Shown here: piece after piece, positions 1 through 33,361 of the stretch
How positions within the stretch are numbered: the first letter of the stretch is position 1
Layout: each line of letters begins with the position of its first letter
IMG/VR virus record: IMGVR_UViG_3300025030_000041
Location: 62,001-126,000 of that record
Reading direction: 5' to 3' (one strand)
Length of the DNA stretch: 64,000 nt
Translations under genes and position numbers: made by a program
Notes under the pieces: model-generated
What the model was told of the DNA's origin: nothing
What the model saw: only the letters and a program-made list of their open reading frames with translations
The model's database searches: none

Positions 1-190
1 TAATAATATCAAGTCTTTTCCTTTTAAATACACAGACCCTGATGGATTTTATATGGCAATTGAATATAACGAACATGAAATGACTAAATTTAAATTAAAA
101 ACCTTAATTAAATATAAAAAATAATTAATTTAATATCAATTAGTTATATTTTTATTTAAAAATAGGTGAAACAAATTAAAGATAAATTAA

Positions 191-198
191 TATATTTG
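191..198 (+). promoter_or_regulatory. Bacteroidota-type -7 promoter box (TAnnTTTG)
   Basis: TATATTTG about 40 bp upstream of the ATG at 237. Confidence 0.5.
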
Positions 199-236
199 CA
201 GTATAACAATCATTATTAACTTAAAACAATTAAAAA

Positions 237-458
237 ATGAAAACAAACAAACTGAAAACTGCTGTTAAAGCCGTTGCAAAAGTAACAAAAGGAAGTAGTG
301 ACGTAGTTCGTAAGATTAAAGTAGGTGATTATACTAAGATTGCTAGAGCGACTGGGTATGACTACAGCCATGTATGGAGAGTTATTAATGGAGAGTCTAG
401 TAATCCATCAGGAGAAATTATGAAATACACCGCTACGGTTATTAAAAACAGAAAATAG
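237..458 (+). CDS. small basic HTH DNA-binding protein
   Basis: YTKIARATGYDYSHVWRVING resembles an HTH; has its own promoter box and terminator. Confidence 0.6.
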   Translation: MKTNKLKTAVKAVAKVTKGSSDVVRKIKVGDYTKIARATGYDYSHVWRVINGESSNPSGEIMKYTATVIKNRK

Positions 459-480
459 TGAGTATTTTTTAAATTTATAA

Positions 481-510
481 AAATAGCCTAATTTTTAATT
501 AGGCTATTTT
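481..510 (+). terminator. intrinsic terminator
   Basis: aaatagcctaatt/aattaggctattt inverted repeat followed by T run. Confidence 0.75.
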
Positions 511-873
511 TATTTTAATGCTTATACGTATACCAATAGTTAAATTCAAATGATTATAGAACTAATAATTTTCTTTTTAAAAGTTTGGTCTATTTTATGG
601 ACTATACTTTTAGTTTTAATAATATATTCTAGTGCTGTGTTAAACTTAAAAAGACTAGAATTTAACCTTAATTTGAAAACCTGTGCGGAATTATCGCTGT
701 ATATTACTTCAATATACACATGGTTTTTATAAAAAAGATAAAAATACCAACTATTGATTATAAATAGCAAGTTGCAACGGAAACTTAATGGTGTCAAAAA
801 TGTCATTTCAGAGTATTATCATAGATATTTTCTTTACTACGTTATATATAGGGGTGATTTAAAACTATAAAAA

Positions 874-1116
874 ATGATAACAGAAAAAGAATACTTAAAA
901 GCAAAAATGATTGTTGAAGCATATGAATGTGAGCAATTGAATAAACCTGCTAGTATAAGCCATATGAAGTGCTGCGACAACCAAGATATAGAAATATTTT
1001 ATAAAAACACCAGTAATAAGGATGGGAGTGGAAGAATGGGTGTTACTCATAAGATATTTAAATGCAAGAATTGTGTTATGCAATCGGCTTTTATTTGTCA
1101 AATGTTTAATAATTAA
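874..1116 (+). CDS. hypothetical cassette-type protein (Cys pairs)
   Basis: ORF; N-terminus MITEKEYLKAK nearly identical to the 13345 ORF. Confidence 0.6.
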   Translation: MITEKEYLKAKMIVEAYECEQLNKPASISHMKCCDNQDIEIFYKNTSNKDGSGRMGVTHKIFKCKNCVMQSAFICQMFNN

Positions 1117-1141
1117 ATACTTAAAAAATAAAAACAGAATT

Positions 1142-1429
1142 ATGTTAGAAAACGAAAACTTGAATGAACCACAAAAAACGCAATTGAATATAAGTGAGGT
1201 TAGCCACAATTGTATTTGTTGCGGAAAAGAAATAAAGAAACTTGATGGACTGCCAAAAGATAAGGATTGGGAAGGTATGTGGAATGGTGGAATAGTTGAA
1301 AAGATAAGTGCTGGGTATGGCAGTTTACTTGATGGAGATATGTATGTTTTGGCTATATGCGATGACTGTGTAAAGTTGAAACAGCTAAAATACGTTGGTA
1401 ACTATATGTTCCCAGACAATTGTGACTAA
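1142..1429 (+). CDS. hypothetical cassette protein (CxxC pairs)
   Basis: Likely start ATG 1142 inside ORF 1022..1429; stop TAA is part of a TAAC site. Confidence 0.65.
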   Translation: MLENENLNEPQKTQLNISEVSHNCICCGKEIKKLDGLPKDKDWEGMWNGGIVEKISAGYGSLLDGDMYVLAICDDCVKLKQLKYVGNYMFPDNCD

Positions 1430-1571
1430 CTGATGACACTAACAGTCAGGTGGGGATTAAATGCACCGTACTTTCACTTGACGATAAGCTTCATTAGACA
1501 CAAGATAGCTTCAATGTGACACAAGCCCCCACTTGCTGTTATTGTATGTTATGGAGCGTTTATTGCCATCA
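1199..1571 (+). mobile_element. solo integron-like cassette array A (degraded)
   Basis: GTTAGCCACAATTGT 1199 / ACAATTGTGACTAAC ending 1430; hairpin TAAC1427-N5-arm...arm-N2-GTTA1548. Confidence 0.7.
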
Positions 1572-1675
1572 CAAATAATTATAAAAGATAATATGATTTA
1601 ACATTTAAGAATCCTAAAAAGTTAAGCAAAATAAAAATAGTAATCTAAATAAATAAAAAGAAAGGGATTAATTTA

Positions 1676-1996
1676 ATGAAAAAATATGTTAAAATCTTTG
1701 AAGATTTTATAAAAGACTCCGCCAATAATATTTATAATGAAGATTTAACTGAAATTATAGGCTGGCTATTAAAATACGGAAAATCTAAATCTGGAGAATC
1801 TGTAGAAGATGAATTAATTAAATTTAAAAAAGAGTTAAATACTAAAGGCATTGGCCAAGAGACTACTGATTTTTATGAATTAGAACAATACATTAGCAAA
1901 GATGAAAAAATAGTAATTATAGACAGCCTATTTAATATATTTTTAAATTTAAATGATTATTATAGAATTAATATGATAGGTAAAAACATCAGTTAG
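1676..1996 (+). CDS. hypothetical protein with MKKYVKIFEDF leader
   Basis: ORF; shared N-terminal motif. Confidence 0.7.
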   Translation: MKKYVKIFEDFIKDSANNIYNEDLTEIIGWLLKYGKSKSGESVEDELIKFKKELNTKGIGQETTDFYELEQYISKDEKIVIIDSLFNIFLNLNDYYRINMIGKNIS

Positions 1997-2037
1997 CATT
2001 TATACAGTAGAAGGAGATTGATTAAATTGGACAGGGT

Positions 2038-2412
2038 ATGAAAGATTTTATAAATTATATTAAAGAAAATAAAAAATATCCGTCTGGATTAAATATTTTT
2101 ATTGATATTGATAAAACAATTGCAATTTTAGATATTGATAAATATGGATTAGATTATTCTAAGAGCGAGCCTATTATAGAAAATATAGAAATAGTAAATG
2201 AGTTATATGATGCTGGAAATACTATAACATTTTATTCAGCTCGAGGCGCATCTTCTAAAATAGATTGGACTGTTGAAACTATAAAACAGTTTAATAGATG
2301 GGGAGTTAAATATCATAAAATAGATTTAACAAAACCTAATTATGATATTTTCATAGACGATAAAGCAATTAATAATTTTAAAGAATTAGATTCCTATTTA
2401 AAACAATTTTAA
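2038..2412 (+). CDS. HAD-superfamily phosphatase
   Basis: DIDKT motif I, SAR motif II, KP...FIDDKA motifs III/IV. Confidence 0.8.
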   Translation: MKDFINYIKENKKYPSGLNIFIDIDKTIAILDIDKYGLDYSKSEPIIENIEIVNELYDAGNTITFYSARGASSKIDWTVETIKQFNRWGVKYHKIDLTKPNYDIFIDDKAINNFKELDSYLKQF

Positions 2413-2488
2413 CAGTTTTTAATAAAATTTTTGAGTAAATGTTAAATTAACCTTTGTTATTTTAGCTTAAAAATAACTTTAATTATAA

Positions 2489-3145
2489 ATGGTAAATCAA
2501 TTCGATTATAATAGTAATAAAGAAACTGATGAATTAAATAACAGAAATGCTGAAACTGATCCATCCAACGATATTCATAATTTGCCCGAAACTGATATAG
2601 ACTATTCTAGACATACCTCTATTGAAGAGGTATCTGATTTAAATTGGGAAATACATTTAGAAAAAGCAAAGCATAATAAAATTTATAATACGTCATATAA
2701 TGACGGAAATAATTTAAAAGATCCATGTGAATATGAATACGGTAAGTCACTTCAAATTGACGCGTCTTACTCAAATTTATATATGGAAAATTATGAACCT
2801 GCTAAATTTATTATTAATAACATCTCGCAAAAACATATAGAGTCATATATAGAAAATAATGAAGATATTAGAACCTTATTAAATTTAAATAAAACATTAG
2901 AAAAAAGAAAATTTAATAAACAAGAAATCAATACTATTTTTTCAATGATTCTTGCTGAAGTTAAACCAATATGCAATGATTATACATTTATTAGTATATT
3001 TGATACAGTAAGTAAATATACTAATATCAATTATAAAAAATTATTTGATTTTTTAGATTATCAATATAAAGAACTAATAATTTTAGAATTAAACGAAGAA
3101 TATAATATTTTAAATAATTATAATAATTTTAACGATTTTTTTTAA
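2489..3145 (+). CDS. hypothetical protein
   Basis: 218 aa ORF. Confidence 0.7.
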   Translation: MVNQFDYNSNKETDELNNRNAETDPSNDIHNLPETDIDYSRHTSIEEVSDLNWEIHLEKAKHNKIYNTSYNDGNNLKDPCEYEYGKSLQIDASYSNLYMENYEPAKFIINNISQKHIESYIENNEDIRTLLNLNKTLEKRKFNKQEINTIFSMILAEVKPICNDYTFISIFDTVSKYTNINYKKLFDFLDYQYKELIILELNEEYNILNNYNNFNDFF

Positions 3146-3148
3146 ACA

Positions 3149-3505
3149 ATGTTTATAGAACATAAAAAAGAAGCAGAGCTAAAAGACAATATTTGGGTTA
3201 ATACTATCCAATTATTAAAGTCAAAACAAGAACAATCTTATCTTTTTAATAATAAATATGGTAAATTTAATATTAAAAAACTAGATGACTATAAAATCAT
3301 AATAGAATTTTTAAATACTACATTATCTAATCTAGATAATACAGGTTTTACAATTACATCACATGATTATGATAGCATTAGTATTAAATCAAATATAATA
3401 GGGTCATCTATAGAATCTATTCCTAATAGAGATACTTTAGAAATACTTTTTGAAATTATTTCCATAGAATTAAAAAAGGAAAAATTTAAAGCCTTAGAAT
3501 TTTAA
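3149..3505 (+). CDS. hypothetical protein
   Basis: 118 aa ORF, tightly packed. Confidence 0.65.
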   Translation: MFIEHKKEAELKDNIWVNTIQLLKSKQEQSYLFNNKYGKFNIKKLDDYKIIIEFLNTTLSNLDNTGFTITSHDYDSISIKSNIIGSSIESIPNRDTLEILFEIISIELKKEKFKALEF

Positions 3506-3506
3506 A

Positions 3507-4337
3507 ATGAAATCTGCAGTATTTATTGATGCTTCAAATTTAATGCACCGGGCATTACGTATCCCTTTTGCATGGAATAGTGTTAAGAATGATCCTAATA
3601 GTAATGCCGCAGTATATTTATTTGTAAATATATTCCATAAATTATATAAAGATAATGAAGGCCGAGATTTATTTTTTGTATTAGATGGATCACCTATACA
3701 AAAAAAGTCTGAATATTCTCAATATAAAGGAAATAGACAGAAATTAGATAATATATATTATCAACAGATGAATAAAATGAAGTCTATTCTTACTAATTTT
3801 CCTATTAAAACTGCATATTGTAAAGATCGAGAAGCTGACGATATTATATACTACTTATGTAAAAATCTAAATTCAAAATACCATGAAATTTTTATTATAA
3901 GTAATGATAAAGATTTTATTCAATTAAAACAACAATTTAATAATATTAAAATATATGACCCGATTAATAATTGTTTTAGAGAACTTCCTGATAAATTAAC
4001 GGGTAAATTTACAGATTATAAGGCTTTAACAGGAGATCCTAGTGACAATATAATTAAAATATTAAGTGAGTCTAAAGCGTTTAAAGCAGCAAATGGCATA
4101 GATAAATGGAAAAGCCTAGCGAGTGACGCCCAACTAAAGCAATATATCCAAAATATTACACTAATTGATTTTACCTTATTAGATTTTTCAGGATTAGAAA
4201 TTGAGAATACTGAATATACTTTTAATAAAGAAAATATAAAAACTTTATTTGAAGAATATAAATTTAATTCAATACTTAAGAAATTTAATGAATGGTCTCA
4301 CGTATTTGAACCAAGTATTTTTAATTCATTATTTTAA
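3507..4337 (+). CDS. 5'-3' exonuclease / T4 RNase H-like (FEN family)
   Basis: FIDASN, YKGNR, EADD, SNDKDF, LTGDPSDNI motifs. Confidence 0.9.
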   Translation: MKSAVFIDASNLMHRALRIPFAWNSVKNDPNSNAAVYLFVNIFHKLYKDNEGRDLFFVLDGSPIQKKSEYSQYKGNRQKLDNIYYQQMNKMKSILTNFPIKTAYCKDREADDIIYYLCKNLNSKYHEIFIISNDKDFIQLKQQFNNIKIYDPINNCFRELPDKLTGKFTDYKALTGDPSDNIIKILSESKAFKAANGIDKWKSLASDAQLKQYIQNITLIDFTLLDFSGLEIENTEYTFNKENIKTLFEEYKFNSILKKFNEWSHVFEPSIFNSLF

Positions 4338-4354
4338 AACTAGGGGTTATTCTG

Positions 4355-4570
4355 AAAATTGATACACCTAGCAAAGAATTAAGTGATGCTGACTTTGTAA
4401 AACTTAGTGAGTTTATACGTTCACATTATGGTATAAATATACTGTATCTAAAAAAGCATGTTACAGGTACGTTTGCAAACCAGATTAAGAAAAAACAACA
4501 TTCTTACTTTTAAAGAGTATTGTAATTTTGTTTTCTCCGGTAAAAATAATGATTCAGAAGTTGTACGCGT
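4355..4570 (+). pseudogene. cheR: frameshifted fragment resembling the N-terminal domain of chemotaxis methyltransferase CheR
   Basis: Hand translation ELSDADFVKLSEFIRSHYGINI.../MLQVRLQTRLRKNNILTFKEYCNFVFS...EVV. Confidence 0.6.
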
Positions 4571-4714
4571 AATTAGTTGAAGATTATGACCGTTTATCGT
4601 TTAGTATATTAATTATCAATTAATTATATTTAATTGATATATTTAGTTCAAAAATAAAGTACCTAAAAAATTTAATATATCAAAAATATTTCTTATTTTT
4701 GTATTAAATATAAC
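4571..4714 (+). repeat. promoter cassette copy 1
   Basis: ttatcaattaattatattt...tttagttcaaaaataaagtac...ttcttATTTTTGtattaaatataac; matches the other copies. Confidence 0.85.
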
Positions 4715-4776
4715 ATGGGCATAAAAGAAATGCCGAAATTAGAAGTACAAATTATCAATTTAAAACAAAAGTAAAT

Positions 4777-5043
4777 ATGAAAAACAAAACATCAATTTTA
4801 GTAGGAGCTCGGCATTTCTTTTATGCCTTATTAGTAGCTGTTATTTTTTGCGGTTGTGGAAACGGTGAAAATTCAGTGAATGGAGAAATAGAATATAGAA
4901 CAATTGTTGTAGATAGCTGTGAGTATATTGTAAAGTATAATGGCTATCAAAGAGGGTATATGTTTTCTCACAAGGGAAATTGTAAATACTGCTACAAACG
5001 TACCCCCATTTTGGTTAGTTGCGTGAAAATATTACAAAATTAA
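4777..5043 (+). CDS. putative lipoprotein (cassette)
   Basis: Hydrophobic stretch followed by FCGC lipobox-like motif; starts inside a hairpin loop. Confidence 0.6.
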   Translation: MKNKTSILVGARHFFYALLVAVIFCGCGNGENSVNGEIEYRTIVVDSCEYIVKYNGYQRGYMFSHKGNCKYCYKRTPILVSCVKILQN

Positions 5044-5192
5044 ATTGAAACATGGATGATAAATTGGATTAAAAACTTATTTAAAAGCAGGGGAAAAACA
5101 ATTAACTAAACATGTTGTTATACACAGTATTTTGTTGGTGGGATTTGACAAATTAAAAATAAATTAGCATATTTACAAAAAAAATAAAAATT

Positions 5193-5504
5193 ATGAAAGA
5201 ATTATTTGAAAAACAATTAAACGGAACACAACCATTAACAAAAGATGTTTTAGAAAAATTACAAGTTAAAACATATTTTAATGGTGAAGAAAAACAAATT
5301 GGTGAAGTTGTATTAATGGCGATGTTAATGGGTGAAGTAATTGAAAAGGAAGGTGAATATCCAAAAGTACCATTAAAATTAATAACATTAAACGAAAGCC
5401 ATTTTAATTTATTTGAATATGATGAAAGATTTAATAGAGGTAATAAATTACCAACAATTAAATTGAAACCTTTAGTTGTGGTGGGTAAAAAATATTGCGT
5501 ATAA
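5193..5504 (+). CDS. hypothetical cassette protein
   Basis: ORF ending in TAA of TAAC. Confidence 0.65.
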   Translation: MKELFEKQLNGTQPLTKDVLEKLQVKTYFNGEEKQIGEVVLMAMLMGEVIEKEGEYPKVPLKLITLNESHFNLFEYDERFNRGNKLPTIKLKPLVVVGKKYCV

Positions 5505-5564
5505 CGTCCACAGGTATATATAGTTGCGTAAATAACATATAAAATTAATTAAAAGCGATAAAGT

Positions 5565-5798
5565 ATGAAAACAGATAAAAGTAAATTAGAAGAACAAAAG
5601 CAGCAATTGGATATACATGTTGTTAGCGGTAGTTTAACTCATATTCCTTTGTTTCAATATAATGTTGCTGTTGAATCACACGGGAATACATTAGAACTAT
5701 TGCGAATTATACAAAACGATAAAAAGGAATTAAAAGAAGAGTTAGAAGCAACATATAAAGAAATTGATAGGTTAAAGGCTAAACTAAATTACTGCTAA
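5565..5798 (+). CDS. hypothetical cassette protein, coiled coil
   Basis: QLDIHVVSGS is the translated recombination-site arm. Confidence 0.7.
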   Translation: MKTDKSKLEEQKQQLDIHVVSGSLTHIPLFQYNVAVESHGNTLELLRIIQNDKKELKEELEATYKEIDRLKAKLNYC

Positions 5799-5801
5799 TG
5801 G

Positions 5802-6065
5802 ATGAGTATAAATTTAGTAAAAATAATACAAATGAAGAATAAAGATAAACTTTGGAATTTTGTTTATGAACAAGAACCAAGACTAATGGGAGAACCATTT
5901 GGTAGATTTAACGTTAAAGTAGAAAAAGATTTTTTTATTATAGAATGTGAATTACTTACAAACTTGGAAAATCCATTTATAAATACAGAATTGAAAAAGT
6001 GTAAGGTTGATCAAAAATCTTTTACTAATTGGAAGAACAAACAAAATTCTATTATTTTTTATTGA
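5802..6065 (+). CDS. hypothetical protein encoded inside a hairpin unit
   Basis: ORF lies between and overlaps arms agtataaatttagtaaaa / ttttattgaatttatact; start may be the later Met. Confidence 0.65.
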   Translation: MSINLVKIIQMKNKDKLWNFVYEQEPRLMGEPFGRFNVKVEKDFFIIECELLTNLENPFINTELKKCKVDQKSFTNWKNKQNSIIFY

Positions 6066-6281
6066 ATTTATACTTTGTTATGTTTAACGAAGTATAGTTG
6101 TGAGAAGCGAACAATTAAACATAACGGTTGGGTGTATATGTAATGTGAGATTTGAAACACTAAACTTGAATTAACCACAAATGATGATTAGAAGTAGGAT
6201 TGTTGAATATACCACTGAACCTCACATTACATATACACCTTGTTATGTGTAGTACGGTGTTAAACTTAAATTTTAAAACTT

Positions 6282-6578
6282 ATGGATACAATAAAAATTA
6301 AATTAGAAAGTGGAAATGAATATAAATTACCAGACATTTCATCAGAAAAGTTTGATGAATATGTTTGGAAAAGTGGTAGTAATGACGTTGAATATGAGAA
6401 ATATAAACGTGAAAACGGAATGATGGAATTAACTGACTTTAATTCTCAAACGACTAGTGAAATCACATTAGTGGTAGAACAATCTTGGAGAGGTAGAGTT
6501 TTAAAATTTAAGTGTGTTTATGATTTTGATAACGATGAAAACTTTGATGAAAAGGAATATTTCGGAGAACATGAGTAG
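6282..6578 (+). CDS. hypothetical acidic cassette protein
   Basis: ORF inside GTTATGTGTAGTAC...GTATTACACATAA body. Confidence 0.7.
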   Translation: MDTIKIKLESGNEYKLPDISSEKFDEYVWKSGSNDVEYEKYKRENGMMELTDFNSQTTSEITLVVEQSWRGRVLKFKCVYDFDNDENFDEKEYFGEHE

Positions 6579-6587
6579 TATTACACA

Positions 6588-6697
6588 TAAATATTATATA
6601 TATATATATACATGTATGTTTAAACTATAATAAAATCAATAGTATGAACGAAAAAATTATAAAGATTTGTAAACAAAAACTTATATATTTAACGTAA
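6588..6697 (+). pseudogene. attI-like terminal site plus putative truncated integrase start (MNEKIIKICKQKLIYLT)
   Basis: Near-identical inverted copy at 46900-47002; same layout as the site upstream of the intact integrase. Confidence 0.55.
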
Positions 6698-6752
6698 TGT
6701 AAAAAACTATTTTGATACATTAAAAATAATTAGTTATAATAGAGTCTAGTAT

Positions 6753-7403
6753 ATGGAATTTAATAAATTTATTAATATACACACTGATAAAACTGCAATA
6801 ATCTGTGGGTGTGGTCAGTCTTTAAATCTTATTAAAGACCGAGTAGATATACTAAATAATGAGAATATAATTACAATAGGAGTAAATGATGTTGCTAAAT
6901 TATTTACTCCTACTTATACGGTGGTTGTAGATTCTCCTAATAGATTTACTAACAATAGAAACTTGCTTATTACAAAAAGTAGTAGCTATATTTTTACACA
7001 AATCGTTGATTGGAAAATTGAATCTGGAAAAAAAGTATTATTTAAACTTGGATTAAAATCTAAATTAGAAAATCTTTATGATAAAAATAATATTATAGAT
7101 TATAGTAATAACTCTCCATATATGGCATGTATTATTGCATATAAAATGGGGTGTCATACAATCGCATTAATTGGAGTAGATTTTACATTAAATCATTTTT
7201 ATGCAGAAGATGGTGAACATAATTTAATTAAAGCAAATAGACTGAATGAAATTAATAATGATTATATAAATTTATATAATGCTTTCAAAATAAAAAATGT
7301 AAATTTATATAATTTAAGTGAAAATAGTAAAGTATTAGGTATACCTAAGCTTAATATTAATGAAATATTAAAAATACATACTAATAATGAAAGTAATAAC
7401 TAA
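6753..7403 (+). CDS. DUF115/MptE-like (glycosyltransferase-related) protein
   Basis: AIICGCGQSL, TIGVN, IALIGVDF motifs. Confidence 0.6.
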   Translation: MEFNKFINIHTDKTAIICGCGQSLNLIKDRVDILNNENIITIGVNDVAKLFTPTYTVVVDSPNRFTNNRNLLITKSSSYIFTQIVDWKIESGKKVLFKLGLKSKLENLYDKNNIIDYSNNSPYMACIIAYKMGCHTIALIGVDFTLNHFYAEDGEHNLIKANRLNEINNDYINLYNAFKIKNVNLYNLSENSKVLGIPKLNINEILKIHTNNESNN

Positions 7404-7623
7404 AGAATTAAAAGAAGTAGACGTACTTAAAGATATAGTGTGTGACTCATGTGGTAAAATGTGTAATACGGAGTATGGATTTGAATATCTAAAATTAAGT
7501 GCAAATTGGGGATTTGGAAGTTCTAAAGATTTGAAAGAATGGAACGCTCACCTTTGCGAAAACTGTACAGATAAAAAACTAGATTTTATTAAATTCAAAA
7601 TTACAAACTACCATCCATTATAA
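7387..7623 (+). CDS. hypothetical zinc-binding protein
   Basis: CDSC...CENC. Confidence 0.65.
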   Translation: MKVITKELKEVDVLKDIVCDSCGKMCNTEYGFEYLKLSANWGFGSSKDLKEWNAHLCENCTDKKLDFIKFKITNYHPL

Positions 7624-7634
7624 ATAAATATATT

Positions 7635-7841
7635 ATGACTACTGAAACCTTAGAACACATAAAAAACTTATATTCTACTCAAGATGAATATAGAGCTAAA
7701 AGTAATGAATTTAAAATAAAGGGATTATTATCAGATGACCCTAATGAAAAAATAAGTCTTAAAAAACAGGAAAGCCTATATTTTGAAAAAATGTCGGATA
7801 TTAATTCTAAAATAACTAAAATACTAAATCAAGAACAATAA
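7635..7841 (+). CDS. hypothetical protein
   Basis: ORF. Confidence 0.55.
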   Translation: MTTETLEHIKNLYSTQDEYRAKSNEFKIKGLLSDDPNEKISLKKQESLYFEKMSDINSKITKILNQEQ

Positions 7842-7879
7842 TTCTAAATAAACTATTATAAATTCTAATTTTTTAAAAT

Positions 7880-8197
7880 ATGTCAGGCGGACACTTTGAT
7901 TACCAGCAATATCATGTTAGTAATATTGCAGATTCTATTGAAAATGAACTTAATAAACAGGGTACTTTAAAACCAAAGGATGAGCTATATTATACCGATG
8001 AGTATTATAGTAAATATCCTGATGAAAAATATTATGCAGCTTATCCTATTGAAATTCAAGAAAAAATGAAAGATGCTATAAAAATACTAAGAACTGCTGC
8101 AATATACGCTCACCGAATTGATTGGTTATTATCTGGAGATGATGGAGAAGAGTCTTTTCTTGAAAGATTGAAAGAAGAACTTGATAAATTAGAATAA
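7880..8197 (+). CDS. hypothetical phage protein
   Basis: ORF with MSGGHFDY start and DWLLSGDDGEESF. Confidence 0.75.
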   Translation: MSGGHFDYQQYHVSNIADSIENELNKQGTLKPKDELYYTDEYYSKYPDEKYYAAYPIEIQEKMKDAIKILRTAAIYAHRIDWLLSGDDGEESFLERLKEELDKLE

Positions 8198-8236
8198 TTA
8201 AAATTCTATTAATTTAAAAATTGAATAAATAATAAC

Positions 8237-8827
8237 ATGGAATATGTTAAATTATTTGAAGCTTACCATAATATTATAAATGTTCCACTACCTCGAGTTT
8301 ATAGTAAAGACAAAAAATTTAGTTCTGCAGTTAATGGAAATAATAACACATTATCTCCTATTGGTTTTTATGAAATTAAAAATGCAATAGAAGAAAAAAT
8401 ACCGTTTACAATTATAACAGTTTGGAATAATAAAAATAAAGAAATTGATAACAAATTATTAATAGAAGAACTTTCTATAAATTTATTAAAACTTAATTTT
8501 AAATTTGCAGTACAAGAAGGAGTAACGCGAGCTGAAGATAATATAGGAGATAGACAAAAACTTAAATTTGAACAAAATATTTTTATATTGAAACCTAAAG
8601 AAATGTCAGATATTAATTTTTTAAGAATGATTAAATCTATAGTAGAATCAAATAAACAAACTAAATTTATATATGGGTTTACTAAAAAAAGAGATGGTAT
8701 TTTTCTATGGAGAAAAAATCAAAAATCTATAAAAATTGGTAAAGAACTGATAAATAGCACCGAGTACTTACCTGAAGACTTAGAGTGTTATTTTAATATT
8801 AATGGAATAAAATATATTTTTATTTAA
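8237..8827 (+). CDS. hypothetical protein with MEYVKLFE leader
   Basis: ORF preceded by AATAAATA. Confidence 0.7.
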   Translation: MEYVKLFEAYHNIINVPLPRVYSKDKKFSSAVNGNNNTLSPIGFYEIKNAIEEKIPFTIITVWNNKNKEIDNKLLIEELSINLLKLNFKFAVQEGVTRAEDNIGDRQKLKFEQNIFILKPKEMSDINFLRMIKSIVESNKQTKFIYGFTKKRDGIFLWRKNQKSIKIGKELINSTEYLPEDLECYFNINGIKYIFI

Positions 8828-8873
8828 TTTATTTTTATACTTTTACAAAAACTATTTACTAAATCGTTTTTTA

Positions 8874-9652
8874 ATGGATACTGATATTGAGACTAACTGT
8901 CTGCAAAAAAAGATGGTAATTTAATACATAATTTAATACCTAAATTTAAATACGAAAATAATTGGATAGCAGGAGGGTGTATTAGAGATATTTTAGATAA
9001 TACTAAATATAATGATATAGATATTTTTTCAAAAAATAGAGAAGACTCTATACGCTTTATAATAAACAATAATTTGCTAGATACTTATGAGATTTCTTTA
9101 GAACATTCTAAAAATAAAAAAGAAAGAAATCTTATTAAATATATTAAAGATGAAGTCTCTACTAAAAACCATAAACCTCTACTTAATTTACGTAATGATC
9201 CAAGAGTGTATAAATTAGATTTTATCAATAACGATAATCATATTCAAGTAATGATAGGCCAAAACTATCCCACTATAGAGTCTTGTATTTATGATTTTGA
9301 TTTTACCATATGCCAGTTTGGGTTTGATGGAAATGATATATATTACTTTGATAATTCAATTAATGATTTACAACAAAAAATAATTAAATTAGCAAAAATT
9401 AAAAATAATAGATTTATATACTTTGAAAGAATAATTAAGTTTTTGAATAGAGGATATAAATTAGATAAAGAATCTTATGAGTTTATTATTAAATCACAAC
9501 CTAGTCTTGAATATTTACAAGAAACTGGAAGAGCCTTAGACTGCGACTTTTTTAAATATATTAATAGTAAAAACTTAAGTGAGACGTTATTAAAAAATAA
9601 AATATCATTATTACATTTAGATGGAATGCTAAACACTACAAATTTAATTTAA
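8874..9652 (+). CDS. tRNA nucleotidyltransferase / poly(A) polymerase-like protein (needs a -1 frameshift near 8906-8912)
   Basis: WIAGGCIRD...NDIDIF lies in frame upstream of the called TTG 9074; FDFTICQ downstream. Confidence 0.7.
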
Positions 9653-9668
9653 TCTTAAAAACCATTAT

Positions 9669-10274
9669 ATGAAACTACCTGTAAAAAAAAATGAATTAAT
9701 ACAAGAATTATCTATTGAATTTAAAAGAACAAAATCTAAATTAGTTTATAATAAACTATATAACTTAATATTACCGCAAGTTCAGTTATATATATATAAA
9801 ATAGTGAAAGACTATGACGACTCTAATGATATTTCATCAGAAGTTATGATTAAGCTTTGGCAAAAAATTGATATGTATAATGAAAATTGGAGATTTAGTA
9901 CATGGATATATAGTATAGCTAGGTATGACGCCTTACAATTTATAAATTATAAAAAAAATACAGTCACATTAACTATTTTTCATGATACCGGCTCTAAAAA
10001 AGAGTTTAATAGCTTTGAAATCTTTAATTCAGAAAAAGACTTCGAAACTTTATATAATACAGTAGTTTCAGAAATACTTAAATTAAATGGTAGAAAAAAG
10101 GAAGTTCTTATTGACAGGGAAATAAATAGAATGAAATATAAGGATATATCGGTTAAATATAATATAAATATTGATACTATTAAAACCTTAATTCGTCAAT
10201 CACGAATACAGGTTTTAGCTAAATTATCAGAGAAAAAACATATAGTAGAACTAGCAAATGAAATTTTAAAATAA
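9669..10274 (+). CDS. ECF-type sigma-70 factor
   Basis: Region 2 DISSEVMIKLWQKI...FSTWIYSIAR; region 4 MKYKDIS...TIKTLIRQSR. Confidence 0.85.
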   Translation: MKLPVKKNELIQELSIEFKRTKSKLVYNKLYNLILPQVQLYIYKIVKDYDDSNDISSEVMIKLWQKIDMYNENWRFSTWIYSIARYDALQFINYKKNTVTLTIFHDTGSKKEFNSFEIFNSEKDFETLYNTVVSEILKLNGRKKEVLIDREINRMKYKDISVKYNINIDTIKTLIRQSRIQVLAKLSEKKHIVELANEILK

Positions 10275-10282
10275 AATAAATT

Positions 10283-10750
10283 ATGAGACTTTCTATACCT
10301 AATTTTATAAATCCTAACTTTATAATTAACAAATTTTATAATATTGTTTTAGAAGTAAATATTTACTTAAAATATATATCTGCATTAAAACAGATGAAAA
10401 ATAATAAAATAATAGGGGATACCCTAGAACTTAGAAAAGACTATATTAATAGGCTATACTCTGTTATTAATTTACCTCCTGAATTTCTTATAGAAGAAGA
10501 AAATAAAGAAGAATTAAATAGATTAGAGGTAGAATACCTTAAACATGAATTTAAAAAATATAATGACGTTTTTTTAGAATACGGAATACTAGACCTAATT
10601 AAAATGAAAACGGAAAAAATATGTACTAAAGACCATTACGCATTTATAATAAAAATAAAATATAAATGGAATGAAACAAATATAATATGGGTATTATACA
10701 TAGTATTCTTAATTGGCCTATTAATAAAACTATACACTATCTTTTTGTAA
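10283..10750 (+). CDS. hypothetical protein with C-terminal TM helix
   Basis: ORF with hydrophobic C-terminus. Confidence 0.7.
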   Translation: MRLSIPNFINPNFIINKFYNIVLEVNIYLKYISALKQMKNNKIIGDTLELRKDYINRLYSVINLPPEFLIEEENKEELNRLEVEYLKHEFKKYNDVFLEYGILDLIKMKTEKICTKDHYAFIIKIKYKWNETNIIWVLYIVFLIGLLIKLYTIFL

Positions 10751-10815
10751 ATTATCTTTTATAATATAGTAAACCTATTTTATTTTAGATACCTAATACC
10801 AAAAATTTAAGTCAT

Positions 10816-12519
10816 ATGGCAATAGATTTAAACTTACTTAAAGATCATAATACTAGACAAGATTATATTAATACTTTAACTAAAGACGAACTTAAAGCAT
10901 TAATTAATAAACTCAAACTGCAAGATAGTGCATTTAAGATTATATTAAATAGCTATTATGGTTCATCAGGTCAAAATTCCTTCGCATTTTTCAATTTAGA
11001 CATAGCGGCGTCAATAACTTTGCAAGGTCAAGATATTATTAAGTATACGGATAAGGTAATAGAACATTATTTTATTAATGAGTGGCATCTTGATAAAGAG
11101 CTTCATAAAAAATTAAGTATAGATCATTTAAAAATTAATCCTATAAAAATAACAAAAGGGCCACCTATAATATATGTTGACACGGATAGCGTCAACGAAA
11201 ATTCAATAATTTATGTAAAAAATATAGGAAAAATTAAAATTAAAGATTTTTTTAAATTATGTTATAAAATTAATAGTATTATTAAATTAAAAAATGGGAA
11301 TGAGATAATTGGTATTTCTAATTTTAGAATATTAAATTTTAATAATACCTTATATTATGCAAAACCTAAAAAACTGATTAGGCATAAAGTAAAAAAGAAA
11401 AAATGGTTATTGAGGTCTAAGTCTGGAAAATCAATAATATGCACAGAAGATCATTCACTAATTGTATTTCACGATGGAATACAATTAAAAATTAAGCCAT
11501 CTGAAATTAATACAAAAATTGATAAAATTTTAACAATTAACGAATTAGACTTAAATTTTAATTATCAATTTGAAGATATATCTGAATGTAAATGTATAGG
11601 TGAATTCGAAGATGAGTGGGTATATGATATTGAAATGGATGATGCAACTCATACGTTTATTGCTAATGATATTTTAGTTCACAATTCTGGTTATATTAAT
11701 TATGATTATATTATAAAGTCGATAGAGGGGTTTGATACATTAAAAATAAGTCCTATATTATTTGCAGCTGATATAATTAAATATAGGATGAATTCTTATT
11801 TAAATAATAAATTTGAAGAATACGCTAAGTCGTATAATGCAATAAACACCCATGATTTTAAATTAGAGCATATTAGTAATAGTGGTATTTTTATTGCAAA
11901 AAAAAATTATATATTAGATGTTGCATTTGAGGATAGACTATTACCTGAGTCGTATTTATTACCTAAGGGGTTTGATTTAGTAAAAGCGTCTTTACCAAAA
12001 TGGGCACGGGCTAAAGGTACAGAATTAATTAAGATTATTTTAAAGAATGGCGACTCTTTAAATATGGATGAGATATTAAATAAATTATTAGAATATAAAG
12101 AAGAATTTAAAGGGCTACACCCTGATGAGTTTAGTATGAATTTTAATCTACGAACATTTAAAAAATATGTCATTAAAGATGACGATCAATTAGTATTTGC
12201 AAAAGGCGCATCTATCTATCCAAGGTCCGCTGGTTATTATAACCATTTATTATATAAGCAAACTGATAATATACGCAAAAAATATAAAAAGGTAAGAACC
12301 GGAGATAAGGTTAGATTTTATAATTGTATGCCTGATGATACGTATAAGATAGATGCATTTAGTTATTTACCTGGAAAATTTCCAATTGAGTTTGCGCCTC
12401 ACGTAGATTATGATGAGCAATTTAATGTTATTATTTTAAATCCATTGAATAGGGCTCTAGAAGCTATGGATATGCCATTAATAGAAAAAAATGTAATGTA
12501 TTTTAATGATTTGTTTTAA
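10816..12519 (+). CDS. family B DNA polymerase, C-terminal subunit (split gp43-like), intein-containing
   Basis: KIILNSYYG (motif B), YVDTD/S (motif C), KKNY, KG; no exonuclease or motif A. Confidence 0.9.
   Translation: MAIDLNLLKDHNTRQDYINTLTKDELKALINKLKLQDSAFKIILNSYYGSSGQNSFAFFNLDIAASITLQGQDIIKYTDKVIEHYFINEWHLDKELHKKLSIDHLKINPIKITKGPPIIYVDTDSVNENSIIYVKNIGKIKIKDFFKLCYKINSIIKLKNGNEIIGISNFRILNFNNTLYYAKPKKLIRHKVKKKKWLLRSKSGKSIICTEDHSLIVFHDGIQLKIKPSEINTKIDKILTINELDLNFNYQFEDISECKCIGEFEDEWVYDIEMDDATHTFIANDILVHNSGYINYDYIIKSIEGFDTLKISPILFAADIIKYRMNSYLNNKFEEYAKSYNAINTHDFKLEHISNSGIFIAKKNYILDVAFEDRLLPESYLLPKGFDLVKASLPKWARAKGTELIKIILKNGDSLNMDEILNKLLEYKEEFKGLHPDEFSMNFNLRTFKKYVIKDDDQLVFAKGASIYPRSAGYYNHLLYKQTDNIRKKYKKVRTGDKVRFYNCMPDDTYKIDAFSYLPGKFPIEFAPHVDYDEQFNVIILNPLNRALEAMDMPLIEKNVMYFNDLF
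11188..11685 (+). mobile_element. mini-intein (166 aa) in DNA polymerase motif C
   Basis: Starts at S after YVDTD, block B CTEDH, block F VYDIE, ends LVHN followed by S; no endonuclease domain. Confidence 0.9.
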
Positions 12520-12907
12520 ATATGAAGATATTAAAGATAAAGCCTTACTATCTAAATTAATAAAAGAAGAGGCTGATAGGATATTTAATTCTAGTATTGC
12601 AAGAAGGCATAGAAGTTATGACATAATATCCAATAATGTCAAATTAGGTAAAACGGCTGAAGTATGGTTATATGAAAATTTCAATTATAAATTTACAAAT
12701 GACATTTATACAGATTTACTAACAGATAGGGGCAATATAATAGAAGTAAAAGTAAAAAGAATTAAAAATCTTAATTGTTTAAATGACCAAATACAAAATG
12801 ACCTTGAAAAAATTAAAAGTTCAAATGTAAATAATTCAACAGTTTATATATGCTTCTCATATAATGACAATATATATAAATTAGAAAAAATAATAAAACT
12901 AACATGA
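12506..12907 (+). CDS. putative PD-(D/E)XK nuclease
   Basis: GKTAE...TDLL...IIEVK. Confidence 0.5.
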   Translation: MICFKYEDIKDKALLSKLIKEEADRIFNSSIARRHRSYDIISNNVKLGKTAEVWLYENFNYKFTNDIYTDLLTDRGNIIEVKVKRIKNLNCLNDQIQNDLEKIKSSNVNNSTVYICFSYNDNIYKLEKIIKLT

Positions 12908-13131
12908 TACAAGTTATTAAATATGCATGTTGTGATAAAATATTTGCAGCATGCCATGAACCTCACTGCTACACTGATACTGACTGGCTTAAAAACCTAA
13001 AACAATATGTTAGGCGAGGCGATAAAGTGGAAATGATACATGGTGGAAATGGACTCCAAATGGGTCAATGCGAGTGTAATGAATTAGTGAAAAGTAAAGA
13101 CCTAAACTTATTTAGTAAAGCAACACAATAA
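12904..13131 (+). CDS. hypothetical Cys-rich protein
   Basis: ORF overlapping the previous stop (ATGA). Confidence 0.6.
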   Translation: MIQVIKYACCDKIFAACHEPHCYTDTDWLKNLKQYVRRGDKVEMIHGGNGLQMGQCECNELVKSKDLNLFSKATQ

Positions 13132-13169
13132 AACTATTCAGTTTAGCCTCACCCATATATAATACACAA

Positions 13170-13301
13170 AGAGTATTATATTTATCATTTAGTAGATTGA
13201 TTATCAATTAATTATATTTACTTGTTATATTTAGTTCAAAAATAAAGTACTAAAAATGTTAATATATCAAAAACATTTCTTATTTTTGTATTAAATATAA
13301 C
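13170..13301 (+). repeat. promoter cassette copy 2
   Basis: agtagattgattatcaattaattatatttacttGTTAtatttagttcaaaaataa...ttatttttgtattaaataTAAC. Confidence 0.9.
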
Positions 13302-13344
13302 AGTTTGCAGGTTTATTTAGTTGCGACTTTAAAAACGAAAAATT

Positions 13345-13515
13345 ATGATAACAGAAAAACAATACTTAAAAGCGAAAAAGTTAATTGCAGACTACGAAAG
13401 CCAGCAATTGAATAAACATGTTGTTATAAGCAGTAAGCCGACCTCAAAAAAGAAGAAGGTGATTATAGATGCAGATAAATTTTCAAAGATGTGTGATGTT
13501 ATTAAACGGATATAG
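13345..13515 (+). CDS. hypothetical cassette peptide, 56 aa (not in ORF track)
   Basis: MITEKQYLKAKKLIADYESQQLNKHVVISS... Confidence 0.65.
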   Translation: MITEKQYLKAKKLIADYESQQLNKHVVISSKPTSKKKKVIIDADKFSKMCDVIKRI

Positions 13516-13587
13516 GCTTATTGCTGCTAACGTTCATCAGATATATTCAGTTCTGATTTTAATATATAACTAAAATAAATTAATAAG

Positions 13588-13845
13588 ATGAAAGATAGAA
13601 AACATATAAAAACATTTGAAGATAAGACATCAGAATTGAATATATCTGATGTTATAAGTAGTAAAACTAAGGAAGAAATTCTAAAATTGATAAAAAGTTT
13701 AGATGATAGAGGGTATTTTTATATTTTCAATAATAGAGAGGATTTTGTAGAGGGTAGAACAGATTGGGATGATTTAAAAGATACTTGTGAAAACTTTTAT
13801 TATGTTATTGAAAATATAAAAGAATTAATAGAAAGAAATGAGTAG
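13588..13845 (+). CDS. hypothetical cassette protein with KHIKTFED leader
   Basis: ELNISDVISS is the translated site. Confidence 0.7.
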   Translation: MKDRKHIKTFEDKTSELNISDVISSKTKEEILKLIKSLDDRGYFYIFNNREDFVEGRTDWDDLKDTCENFYYVIENIKELIERNE

Positions 13846-13925
13846 TTTTATTACTTATAACGTGCCGCAGCTTGACGCTGTTGGCGATTTGAAACACGAA
13901 TTTTAATTAAACAACAAAAGTAAAT

Positions 13926-14270
13926 ATGGAAACGAAAACTTCAATTAACAACGAAACCGCCAATAGCGTTCAAGGTACTGTTAGGCGTAGGGCGGACATC
14001 AATCAGGAGATTGCCGAAAAATGGGAATTAATCGCTCAAATCAAAACAGAAATAGTTGCCTTGAAAAAAGAGGAACTTCTATTGTGTGATGACCACCAAA
14101 GATTTGAGGAAACGGAAGAAGAAATAACAATTTCAAGGCGACCAAAGAAAACCGAAAAGCGATTAATTGGGCGTATTCATTGGAAGGAAGAATTTAAGGA
14201 TGAAGATACAGAGCAATCTATTTGGATTGAGCGTTCACAGGTTGTTCGCGTCAATGGTGTGTGGCAGTAG
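13926..14270 (+). CDS. hypothetical cassette protein
   Basis: ORF; more GC-rich than the backbone. Confidence 0.75.
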   Translation: METKTSINNETANSVQGTVRRRADINQEIAEKWELIAQIKTEIVALKKEELLLCDDHQRFEETEEEITISRRPKKTEKRLIGRIHWKEEFKDEDTEQSIWIERSQVVRVNGVWQ

Positions 14271-14382
14271 CCTTACGCCTAACGTTTTGCGTATATGTGA
14301 AGTACGCATAGCAGAAACTTGAAATTAAATACAAACCTTAATGGCGTATTTCACATATACGCTGTTAGCAAATCGTAAAATT

Positions 14383-14559
14383 ATGACTAAGAAAGATATT
14401 TTAAAATTAGTAGAAGAAACATTCAGCGAAGAAATTTCAACTTCTTGTGCTGAAACTGTATTAGGACTTGAAAGTTGGATTGATGGTAAAGAAGAATTTA
14501 TGGAAAAGTTAGCAGAGAAGTTGAAATTGTTATTTGATGATAACGACTTATCTAAATAA
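14383..14559 (+). CDS. hypothetical cassette protein
   Basis: Start at 14383 or 14341. Confidence 0.6.
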   Translation: MTKKDILKLVEETFSEEISTSCAETVLGLESWIDGKEEFMEKLAEKLKLLFDDNDLSK

Positions 14560-14571
14560 TTTTATGTTTGC

Positions 14572-14731
14572 TAACGTTCTGTAAATATGATTAGTTGAAG
14601 AGTACTGTCATTTATAATTTAGTAGATTGATTATCAATTAATTATATTTACTTATTATATTTAGTTCAAAAATAAAGTACTAAACGTGTTAATATATCAA
14701 AAATATTTCTTATTTTTGTATTAAATATAAC
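14572..14731 (+). repeat. complete promoter-only cassette (copy 3)
   Basis: TAAC-gttct-GTAAATATGATTAGTTGA...TCAATTAATTATATTTAC-tt-ATTA-body-TAAC; no ORF. Confidence 0.9.
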
Positions 14732-14757
14732 GGCTACAGATAAACTCAGTTTTTATT

Positions 14758-14979
14758 ATGGAAAAGAAAATATATTACGAAAACAATTGGTTAAATCAGC
14801 ACTTAAATAAAGTTGGATTGCTCGATAAAAAATTGAGTTTATCTGATGTTATGTGTTGTGTTTGTGGGTCGGAACTCACAATTCAAGAGAATGAAGAAAA
14901 TCTAACTTATGATGTTAGAGAACGAATATGTGATAAATGTAATAGTGAGTTGAGCGAGGAAAGAAAACATTGCATATAA
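14758..14979 (+). CDS. hypothetical zinc-ribbon cassette protein
   Basis: CCVC...CDKC; stop is part of TAAC. Confidence 0.7.
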   Translation: MEKKIYYENNWLNQHLNKVGLLDKKLSLSDVMCCVCGSELTIQENEENLTYDVRERICDKCNSELSEERKHCI

Positions 14980-14997
14980 CGGCATCCGCTATGAGTA

Positions 14998-15291
14998 GTG
15001 GCGGATTTAGAACTACTCACTTTAAATTTAGCACAAATGACAATAGAAAGCACAGAACATCAAGAAAGCACTAACCCGCCATTACTTATATCGAGTGTTA
15101 GCGGTAGTGTTTTTCGTCCGAAGAATGGACACGAATTACTGCAAGCATTGAAAGAAAATAAACAATGTGAGATAGTAGATACACACGCATTTTTAGCAAC
15201 AAAAGCACTTGAAGACAACCATTGCGGATTTTCATTTTCTTTCAAGCTGTCAAAGTGGAATAAAGGATGGTCAGGTTTCGAGTGGTCTTAA
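14998..15291 (+). CDS. hypothetical cassette protein (integrase-proximal)
   Basis: LLISSVSGS translated site; start may be ATG 15037. Confidence 0.65.
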   Translation: MADLELLTLNLAQMTIESTEHQESTNPPLLISSVSGSVFRPKNGHELLQALKENKQCEIVDTHAFLATKALEDNHCGFSFSFKLSKWNKGWSGFEWS

Positions 15292-15300
15292 CATTACCGC

Positions 15301-15320
15301 TAACTATTATATATATACAA
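15301..15320 (+). other. attI-like terminal recombination site (TAAC-TAT-(TA)5)
   Basis: Last TAAC has no partner hairpin and lies 37 bp before the integrase ATG. Confidence 0.6.
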
Positions 15321-15340
15321 GTACGCTTAATATATTGAAT

Positions 15341-16156
15341 ATGAATACTAAATTTGATTGTATTATCAGAAAATTTGAAAAAACTCTGATAATAAAAAAT
15401 TATTCAACATGTACTATTAATAATTATAAAAGTTGTCTTTATAACTTTTTAATAGAAATAAACAATGATCCATACCATTTAAATTTAGAACAGTTAAACA
15501 ACTATTTATTTAATTTTAATTATTCGTCAGTATCACAGCAAAATCAAATACTTAATTCTTTAAAAATATTCTATTTATTAATTTTAAAAAAATCAATAAA
15601 ACATTTAATTAAAATTAAAAGACCACGAAGAGAAAAGAAATTACCACAAGTAATTTCGCATGATGAAATTGTGCAATCAATTTCCAAAATACAAAACTTA
15701 AAACATAAAGCTATCATATCGCTAGCATATAGTAGTGGATTAAGAGTTTCAGAAATATGTAATCTTAAATTAGAAGACATAGATTCAAAAAGAATGCTAA
15801 TTTTAGTTAAATCAGGAAAAGGAAGAAAAGATAGAGTTGTACCTCTTTCAAATCATATTTTAGGGCTTTTAAGAAAATACTATCTTAAATACAAACCTGA
15901 GTTTTATCTTTTTGAAAGCTATGCTCATGGAGTTAAATATTCTACTTCAAGTTGTAGGCAAATTTGGAATAATTTTAAAATTAATAAAAATTCAACTTTT
16001 CATACATTGAGGCATTCATGCTTTACAAATCTTTTAGAAAATGGAACGGACATACGAATAATTCAAAAAATAGCAGGGCATTCATCAATAAAAACTACAG
16101 AAATTTATACTCACATATCAACTAATATCTTAAATAAGATTAAATTACCAATTTAA
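15341..16156 (+). CDS. tyrosine recombinase / integrase (271 aa)
   Basis: SGLRVSE (R), GKGRKDR (K), HTLRH, GHSSIKTTEIY; N-terminal SAM-like domain; the track start 15209 overlaps a cassette, so 15341 is preferred. Confidence 0.95.
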   Translation: MNTKFDCIIRKFEKTLIIKNYSTCTINNYKSCLYNFLIEINNDPYHLNLEQLNNYLFNFNYSSVSQQNQILNSLKIFYLLILKKSIKHLIKIKRPRREKKLPQVISHDEIVQSISKIQNLKHKAIISLAYSSGLRVSEICNLKLEDIDSKRMLILVKSGKGRKDRVVPLSNHILGLLRKYYLKYKPEFYLFESYAHGVKYSTSSCRQIWNNFKINKNSTFHTLRHSCFTNLLENGTDIRIIQKIAGHSSIKTTEIYTHISTNILNKIKLPI

Positions 16157-16224
16157 AAAAAAAATATTAGTTTTAATACTAATTAAACTCCAATAATAGA
16201 AAAAACTTAAAAACAATTAAAAAT

Positions 16225-16965: not shown

Positions 16966-17002
16966 TAGTGTATATGTTATTTAATTTAAATACTTTTTAA
17001 TC

Positions 17003-27721: not shown

Positions 27722-27724
27722 TAT

Positions 27725-28348: not shown

Positions 28349-28365
28349 TTTCGTGTATTTTATTT

Positions 28366-29363: not shown

Positions 29364-29392
29364 GATAAAGTATTTTATTTTTATTTATTTAT

Positions 29393-29944: not shown

Positions 29945-29947
29945 TTA

Positions 29948-30484: not shown

Positions 30485-30500
30485 TTACTTATATATTTTT

Positions 30501-31010: not shown

Positions 31011-31011
31011 T

Positions 31012-32691: not shown

Positions 32692-32706
32692 TAATATTAT
32701 TTATTT

Positions 32707-33285: not shown

Positions 33286-33311
33286 TATTTTTATTTATTT
33301 TTATTTAAAAT

Positions 33312-33338
33312 AAAAAAGGCTGATGTAAATCAGCCTTT
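33312..33338 (-). terminator. intrinsic terminator
   Basis: aaaggctgat/atcagccttt hairpin with A run on + strand. Confidence 0.7.
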
Positions 33339-33361
33339 ATATAAACAAAAATAGTTTTTTG

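Follow-up and report, generated by a model that had tools for sequence, protein, structure and literature searches.

The DNA under study is a window of 64,000 nucleotides, positions 62,001 to 126,000 of the IMG/VR virus record IMGVR_UViG_3300025030_000041. The record comes from groundwater metagenomes and consists of a single sequence of 246,115 bp with 26% G+C, which CheckV rates as 92% complete. Its capsid is distantly T4-like, and no alternative genetic code was needed. Two small ORFs of the window, 874-1116 (80 aa) and 13345-13515 (56 aa), share 17 of 28 N-terminal residues (BLASTP E 2e-10) and diverge thereafter. The features that surround them, all on the + strand, are as follows; bit scores and E values are those of a covariance model described below.

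874-1116 (+), ORF of 80 aa in which a MITEK leader (874-955) is fused to a Cys-rich body; a decayed cassette that has lost its left arm and its outer arm, with only a weak model hit at 831-935 (E 0.042)
858-960 (+), block of DNA similarity (78.6%) to the MITEK hairpin site at 13329-13431, ending just after the GTA/GTTA core
1089-1205 (+), decayed hairpin site (E 0.036) whose right arm (1181-1202) encodes QLNISEV of ORF 1142-1429; the outer arms of that cassette are still 10/11 complementary
1424-1554 (+), hairpin site (69.6 bits)
4708-4836 (+), hairpin site whose right arm encodes the hydrophobic core of a lipoprotein signal peptide (ORF 4777-5043)
4993-5123 (+), decayed hairpin site (right arm 5099-5120; E 0.012)
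5499-5628 (+), hairpin site with the MKTDKSKLEE leader (right arm 5604-5625; 55.6 bits; not in the training set)
6119-6248 (+), non-coding hairpin site (122.5 bits on the + strand against 29.3 on the - strand); sites of this type are 86-100% identical across phages
13180-13300 (+), promoter-like element of about 120 nt, with other copies in the window at 4593-4714 and 14608-14732
13298-13426 (+), MITEK hairpin site (84.7 bits, E 2e-14), with TAAC at 13298-13301, arms, a loop holding the ATG at 13345, and GTTA at 13423-13426; the + strand folds into the hairpin and the - strand does not
13345-13515 (+), ORF of 56 aa, its leader encoded by the loop and the right arm
13427-13437 (+), outer arm a of the MITEK cassette, which pairs with 13517-13527 (a') with a G.T at position 7
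13517-13531 (+), outer arm a' plus the TAAC that ends the MITEK cassette; the 99% intragenomic repeat unit runs from 13296 to 13532
13525-13657 (+), hairpin site with the leader MKDRKHIK...ELNISDV
13855-13986 (+), hairpin site with the METKTS leader (100.2 bits)
14277-14370 (+), hairpin site of the short class (about 88 nt; 55.2 bits)
14569-14660 (+), short hairpin that heads the promoter cassette (27.8 bits, E 0.0025); the unit 14572-14733 is repeated at 99.4% at genome 159791-159952
14725-14854 (+), hairpin site with the MEKKIYYEN leader
14974-15103 (+), last hairpin site of the array, with the MTIESTEHQ leader (107.2 bits)
15301-15340 (+), terminal TAAC followed by TATTATATATA, an attI-like junction 37 nt before the recombinase ATG
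15341-16156 (+), tyrosine recombinase of 271 aa, XerA-like, without the IntI insertion

The preliminary description reported that the two ORFs are alike up to a GTTA position and unrelated after it, and that observation is confirmed. The DNA similarity covers window 858-960 against 13329-13431 at 78.6% and ends 5 nt after GTTA, which is GTA in the 874 copy; these 5 nt match the family consensus for that position. The right-arm motif, noted before at about 5100-5120 and 5603-5625, recurs on the + strand at 934, 1181, 5099, 5604, 13405 and 13633. That is 9 matches in all against 2.75 expected, and 0 of 100 shuffles reach 9. Two points can be added. The 56-aa ORF occurs three times, identical, in the 246-kb genome (genome 75345, 158452 and 234761, the last on the minus strand), and the 874 copy no longer folds. 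The body of ORF 874 and that of the MITEK-leader ORF at L025:5752-5946 (L numbers denote the loci fetched for comparison) both start with C(x)CDN and end with a CxxC pair, and they may be the same small zinc-ribbon cassette, although BLAST did not detect the similarity.

The shared motif is the 3' arm of a roughly 125-nt imperfect hairpin. Its 5' arm begins with TAAC right after the previous gene, and its loop carries the A-rich leader and the ATG of the next gene. In an alignment of 13 long sites TAAC is invariant and GTTA is kept in 12, the remaining site having ATTA. A spacer of 4-5 nt follows TAAC, while only 1-2 nt precede GTTA; the spacer is longer on the left in 314 of 319 sites. A hairpin scan anchored directly on the cores failed because of this unpaired spacer. 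The 16-bp stem is 90% paired, 14 of its 16 pairs show compensatory changes, and one position is G.T in 11 of the 13 sites. Of the cells 85% are paired against 68% in shuffles, with 0 of 500 shuffles as good, and slid registers give only 35-46% pairing. A covariance model built from these sites finds 23 sites in the genome at E<=0.01, 10 of them not used in training, and it is strongly strand-specific. The focal MITEK hairpin, however, is only modestly stable as DNA (-12.5 kcal/mol, z -1.3). An Rfam scan of window 1-17000 found nothing relevant, and a Pfam scan of nine cassette proteins gave no family above its cut-off.

The three nucleotides flanking the cores of a single site do not pair with each other, as only 41% of cells pair. 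Pairing instead links neighbouring sites. Across 76 distinct IMG/VR phage loci, the 3 nt after GTTA of one site are the reverse complement of the 3 nt before TAAC of the next in 145 of 187 adjacent pairs, where permutation gives a mean of 16.7 and a maximum of 32 in 5000; the same test within one site gives only 22 of 262. The complementarity runs for 11 nt with a conserved G.T at position 7, the T being present in 182 of 182 cases. Each gene body is therefore bracketed by arms that continue the TAAC/GTTA core. In a circle made of one hairpin and one body, the outer arms, the core and the inner stem would form one duplex interrupted by the spacer. No function in a linear array requires this arrangement; it is the pattern expected of cassettes that circularise, and the signature that integron cassettes show on a smaller scale. 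The neighbour rule by itself does not distinguish between two cassette models, and the distinction came from duplicated units and from pairs of related phages. A third class of site, a mini-hairpin of about 48 nt (TAAC, a short stem, a small loop, GTTA), is almost identical in many viral loci (L055:1553-1600, L048, L049, L053, L087), and L076:2332-2357 holds an "empty" cassette made only of the two outer arms.

The array at 13.3-15.1 kb ends at TAAC 15301-15304, which pairs correctly with the arm after GTTA 15097-15100. It is followed by TATTATATATA and, 37 nt further on, by the recombinase, a member of the Phage_integrase (tyrosine recombinase) family (PF00589, 131.6 bits). The best profile is that of archaeal XerA (XerA_Arch, 194.6 against a cut-off of 220), while the integron-integrase profile TIGR02249 scores 170.7 against a cut-off of 265, in two stretches. 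Against VchIntIA (2a3v), query residues 180-205 correspond to IntIA residues 179-250, so that about 45 residues, the IntI-specific I2 helix insertion in the catalytic fold, are missing. The genome holds a second copy of the gene, 51% identical, and a fragment of a third, each at the end of another array, so that three arrays each abut an integrase gene or a remnant of one. IS200/IS605 and REP/RAYT hairpin elements, which have an HUH (Y1) transposase, a hairpin and a conserved tetranucleotide cleavage site, do not match, the linked enzyme being a tyrosine recombinase; no HUH gene was seen among the ORFs beside the arrays in the window.

A search of viral contigs found 217 relatives. A first scan of the 80 fetched loci found 262 sites against 12 in a reversed-sequence control. 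In the 76 distinct loci kept, 251 of 264 sites lie upstream of and co-oriented with the recombinase; since these loci were chosen through the integrase, the frequency of sites away from integrases was measured only in the present genome. The TAAC-TATTATATATA junction is found 37-50 nt before the ATG in about 28 loci. A nucleotide search of INPHARED phages with the array gave a single 103-nt hit, at L008:10007-10130 in the 642-kb uncultured phage LR756502. This is a leader hairpin homologous to the site at window 14974-15103, with degenerate cores (no TAAC, and ATTA in place of GTTA), fused to a different body; a TAAC..GTTA scan found no sites in its 20-kb surroundings.

Evidence that cassettes move comes first from within the genome. 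The MITEK unit (window 13296-13532) recurs twice more at 99% identity, with different neighbours on both sides, and runs from TAAC to the next TAAC. The promoter-bearing unit (14572-14733) behaves in the same way. Phage contigs with nearly identical recombinase genes give the clearest evidence. L020 and L021 are 100% identical from the terminal TAAC onwards and unrelated before it, and L083 and L086 show the same pattern with integrase and junction regions about 96-99% identical (about 96% for the junction sequence); in both pairs unrelated last cassettes are joined to the same junction sequence, and identity starts exactly at TAAC. L055 and L072 carry the same two cassette blocks in opposite order. 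Every junction falls exactly at a TAAC, and one block lies next to the terminal junction in one phage but is internal in the other. When public runs were compared with window 12300-17300 (5001 letters), only assembled Logan contigs from groundwater metagenomes were returned; their joints have single-copy depth and match the paralogous copies elsewhere in the genome, and no conclusion about excision was drawn from them. Contigs from two other groundwater studies join 12897 to 16052, skipping the whole array and most of the recombinase, but only 20 letters lie on one side, and this may be a relative that lacks the array or an artefact.

Ordinary homologous recombination between repeated promoter and stem-loop modules, as with the PeSLs of T4-type phages and with no part played by the nearby recombinase gene, is an alternative that we consider very unlikely. 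In its favor are the distantly T4-like capsid, the promoter-like element present in at least 14 copies in the genome, and hairpin families that are 90-100% identical between loci and could provide homology. The promoter-like element always ends at TATAAC and contains TATTTTTG, which fits the Bacteroidota -7 box TAnnTTTG and would fit a Bacteroidota host. However, the exchange junctions lie at a 4-nt core between sequences that are otherwise unrelated on one side, which homologous exchange does not produce, and the covarying outer arms and the strict linkage to a recombinase gene across 76 loci are not expected for PeSLs.

The sequences on the two sides of GTTA are combined freely. Of 264 sites, 122 have an ATG in the loop whose frame runs through the right arm and GTTA into the body, including 99 of 151 long sites, and GTT is read as a codon in 77 of the 122. 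Leaders form families but bodies do not follow them: of 200 leader-similar pairs, 197 have unrelated bodies and only 3 have similar ones. The MITEK family has 7 members with 7 different bodies (two in this genome, plus L025, L038, L039, L052 and L078), and the MKDxKHIK..NLNISDV family, to which the leader at 13525-13657 belongs, has 36 members with 36 different bodies. Homologous bodies amount to 8 pairs, too few to test linkage from that side. Whether breakpoints are clustered or scattered, a point set as a test beforehand, was examined in 137 pairs of hairpins at least 90% identical. Identity stops 0-4 nt left of TAAC in 109 pairs and within 12 nt right of GTTA in 110, and the breakpoints are therefore sharply clustered. 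Where identity passes only one core, it continues to the right in 22 pairs and to the left in 4. Such hairpin pairs are 93% identical on average, while the adjacent recombinase genes are 72% identical.

The preliminary description inferred that hairpin or leader modules and bodies can be exchanged at the second core, GTTA, giving chimeric proteins and possibly new cassettes. This interpretation is supported only in part. The leader is a hairpin module, modules and bodies are combined combinatorially, and breakpoints are clustered. Yet every recent, unambiguous exchange, namely the intragenomic 99% duplicates and the cassette replacement and reordering between near-identical phages, maps to the first core, TAAC, and the unit that moves is the hairpin plus its downstream body. 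Exchange at the second core, for instance when the less favoured strand folds and is cut, remains a plausible minor route or a route of cassette genesis, but as the main account it is doubtful. Besides the pervasive discontinuity at GTTA, it is favored by a 130-nt hairpin (L038:1333-1462 and L050:2880-3009) that is 100% identical between phages whose integrase genes are 76% identical, with unrelated flanks on both sides, and by the finding that integron attC sites recombine on the non-preferred strand at lower frequency (Qi 2023, PMC9892861). On the other hand, site families placed before unrelated genes are also what integron attC families show, with no exchange inside the site.

A conserved N-terminal domain shared by a paralogous family of small proteins, such as a helical leader or targeting peptide, with the DNA hairpin being incidental, is the least likely of the alternatives. 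Leader peptides do form recognisable families across phages, and one site family encodes a real lipoprotein signal peptide. But 142 of 264 sites have no through-reading ATG, the arms covary as base pairs and not as codons, different leader families share only the structure and the cores, and no Pfam family matches the nine cassette proteins scanned.

It is also improbable that the hairpins are mainly RNA elements, such as 5'-UTR or intercistronic structures for translation control, RNase processing or mRNA stability, with the modular look as a by-product. In the phage the fold-prone strand is the mRNA strand, the start codon sits in the loop in an A-rich context, the conserved mismatches are G.U-compatible, and a repeated promoter-like element ends just before a site. 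Stem mismatches on the coding strand of the phage loci are G.T 525 times and A.C 44 times. Flavobacterium limicola, F. saccharophilum, F. palustre and other Bacteroidota chromosomes (L124:6800-9400, L168:8500-12450, L123, L128, L148), however, carry arrays of the same ~125-nt TAAC..GTTA sites downstream of a 347-aa homologue of the recombinase; the homologues are up to 48% identical and also lack the IntI insertion. These arrays obey the same neighbour-complementarity rule, and the phage-trained covariance model hits 5, 3 and 7 places in three of these genomes. There the sites are inverted (A.C 44 against G.T 12), yet the cassette ORFs remain on the recombinase strand; the sites are antisense to these ORFs, so the wobbles would be A.C in the mRNA. 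The fold-prone strand is thus the mRNA strand in phages and the template strand in bacteria, which argues against a common RNA role. The 11-nt arms also pair across bodies of up to 1.4 kb, and the rule relating neighbouring sites, the conserved junction beside a recombinase gene, and cassette swaps exactly at TAAC have no RNA explanation. An additional RNA role in the phage is not excluded.

We consider it likely, therefore, that the shared N-terminal module is not a shuffled protein domain but the translation of a DNA recombination site. In this view the phage carries arrays of cassettes, each starting with a hairpin site made of TAAC, a 4-5-nt unpaired spacer, a 16-20-bp imperfect stem, a loop of 40-85 nt, the return arm and GTTA, followed by a gene body whose first and last 11 nt are complementary to each other. 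In two thirds of the long sites the loop holds the ATG, so the right arm and the GTT core would be read as codons, which gives the recurring ..QLNxxVxS.. peptide. The recombinase would act on the folded coding strand, cut in or beside TAAC, excise hairpin-plus-body circles in which the outer arms, the core and the inner stem stack into one long duplex, and reinsert them at the junction next to its own gene or at other sites. Leader families would be site families, the same site family sitting in front of unrelated bodies as VCR-type attC sites do in Vibrio, and ORF 874 would be an old cassette of the MITEK site family with a different body and a decayed site. The anatomy, the covariation, the linkage to the recombinase and the breakpoints at TAAC are shown by computation, whereas catalysis by this enzyme, including excision and integration, a single-stranded substrate, the exact cut within TAAC, circular intermediates, and the way in which bodies become joined to sites at GTTA are inferred. 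The recombinase lacks the insertion that IntI uses to read extrahelical bases, so that recognition of a folded single strand is conjecture, and a double-stranded or cruciform substrate is equally possible. Integron sites have extrahelical bases that give strand choice, and their folded bottom strand recombines; here no conserved bulged bases were identified, although strand asymmetry exists in the mismatches and in the model scores. The model also does not explain why most similar hairpins share nothing beyond GTTA; this could reflect rare recombination on the other strand at GTTA or some other route by which cassettes are born.

The logic is that of integrons (IntI, attI, attC cassette arrays), with a different enzyme and an inverted gene orientation. 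As in integrons, arrays of small, mostly unknown genes are separated by imperfect hairpin sites conserved in structure rather than sequence, with inverted AAC/GTT cores, an unpaired spacer and strand asymmetry; the two ends of a cassette complement each other across the core; and a primary junction lies beside a tyrosine recombinase gene. Read along the fold-prone strand, the order is array, junction, recombinase in both. The enzyme, however, lacks the roughly 45-residue IntI insertion, and end complementarity is 4+11 bp with a fixed G.T rather than a 7-bp R box. In the phage the genes lie on the fold-prone strand and run in the same direction as the recombinase (165 against 2) rather than divergently. 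The site lies upstream of its ORF and often contains the start (122 of 264 sites), with the first 20-30 codons inside the site, whereas integron ORFs are promoterless, are followed by their attC and are expressed from Pc. Promoters arrive as separate cassettes rather than as a Pc promoter in intI. The host is a phage of about 246 kb that carries several arrays.

CALINs, attC clusters without integrase, have been reported in virulent phages, including a phage of a Flavobacteriaceae host (Qi et al. 2023, PMC9892861). Those clusters have 2-4 sites found with IntegronFinder or HattCI, with no associated recombinase and no embedded starts, whereas here there are 23 sites in one genome, each array has its own recombinase gene or a remnant of one, and hundreds of related loci exist. 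In PeSLs of T4-type phages (Arbiol 2010, PMC2839356; Comeau 2014, PMC4122927), repeated promoter and stem-loop modules flank accessory ORFs in hyperplastic regions of large myoviruses and are proposed to shuffle the ORFs and to form mini-circles. PeSLs act through homologous recombination between near-identical copies of promoter plus terminator modules, while here the junctions are at a 4-nt core, the stems vary and covary, and a dedicated tyrosine recombinase is linked. Xer-type enzymes also move DNA using a folded single strand, as in the attP of CTX phage, or short sites that flank gene modules, as in the pdif modules of Acinetobacter plasmids. Those systems, and Xer/dif-type modules such as IMEX, use host XerCD and dif-like 28-bp sites with two 11-bp arms and a 6-8-bp central region; no dif-like site was noted here, the sites being 48-130-nt hairpins, and the enzyme is encoded beside the array.

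Integrons are the textbook gene-capture machine of bacteria. They are defined by the IntI insertion, are nearly absent from Bacteroidota, where IntegronFinder 2.0 found almost no complete ones (Néron 2022), and are known in phages only as small clusters of sites without an integrase. Full-text literature searches found no description of the present system within the library consulted, and it is apparently undescribed. It is somewhat more likely than not that Bacteroidota and their large phages possess a second kind of integron, run by a Xer-like recombinase without the IntI domain. The phage version would place genes on the folding strand, so that the recombination site doubles as the translation start and N-terminal leader; each cassette would bring its own start, and any recombination at the second core would create new N-terminal fusions. 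A widespread system of this kind would show that hairpin-cassette capture evolved, or persists, without the IntI domain. It would explain how huge phages collect and reshuffle dozens of small accessory genes, which are likely host-takeover or counter-defence genes. It would offer natural test material for the unsolved question of how cassettes are born, because site and coding sequence overlap, and would warn annotators that shared N-termini in small phage ORFs can be translated recombination sites rather than protein domains.

Other features of the genome were observed alongside the arrays. At window 10816-12519, the family-B DNA polymerase fragment appears to be interrupted after its DTDS motif by an intein-like insert that ends in VHNS. 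A large paralogous family of ~170-210-aa proteins, with a conserved MKHIKLFEQF N-terminus and LTSLEGAP-type repeats, occurs at window 27200-33961 (- strand) and in more than 20 other places in the genome, and dominates its self-BLAST. At window 19862-23324 (- strand), two adjacent paralogous ORFs of about 583 aa have Cys-rich N-terminal halves and share a nearly identical stretch around ILNLLNKTPNRIYSRKC in their C-terminal halves.
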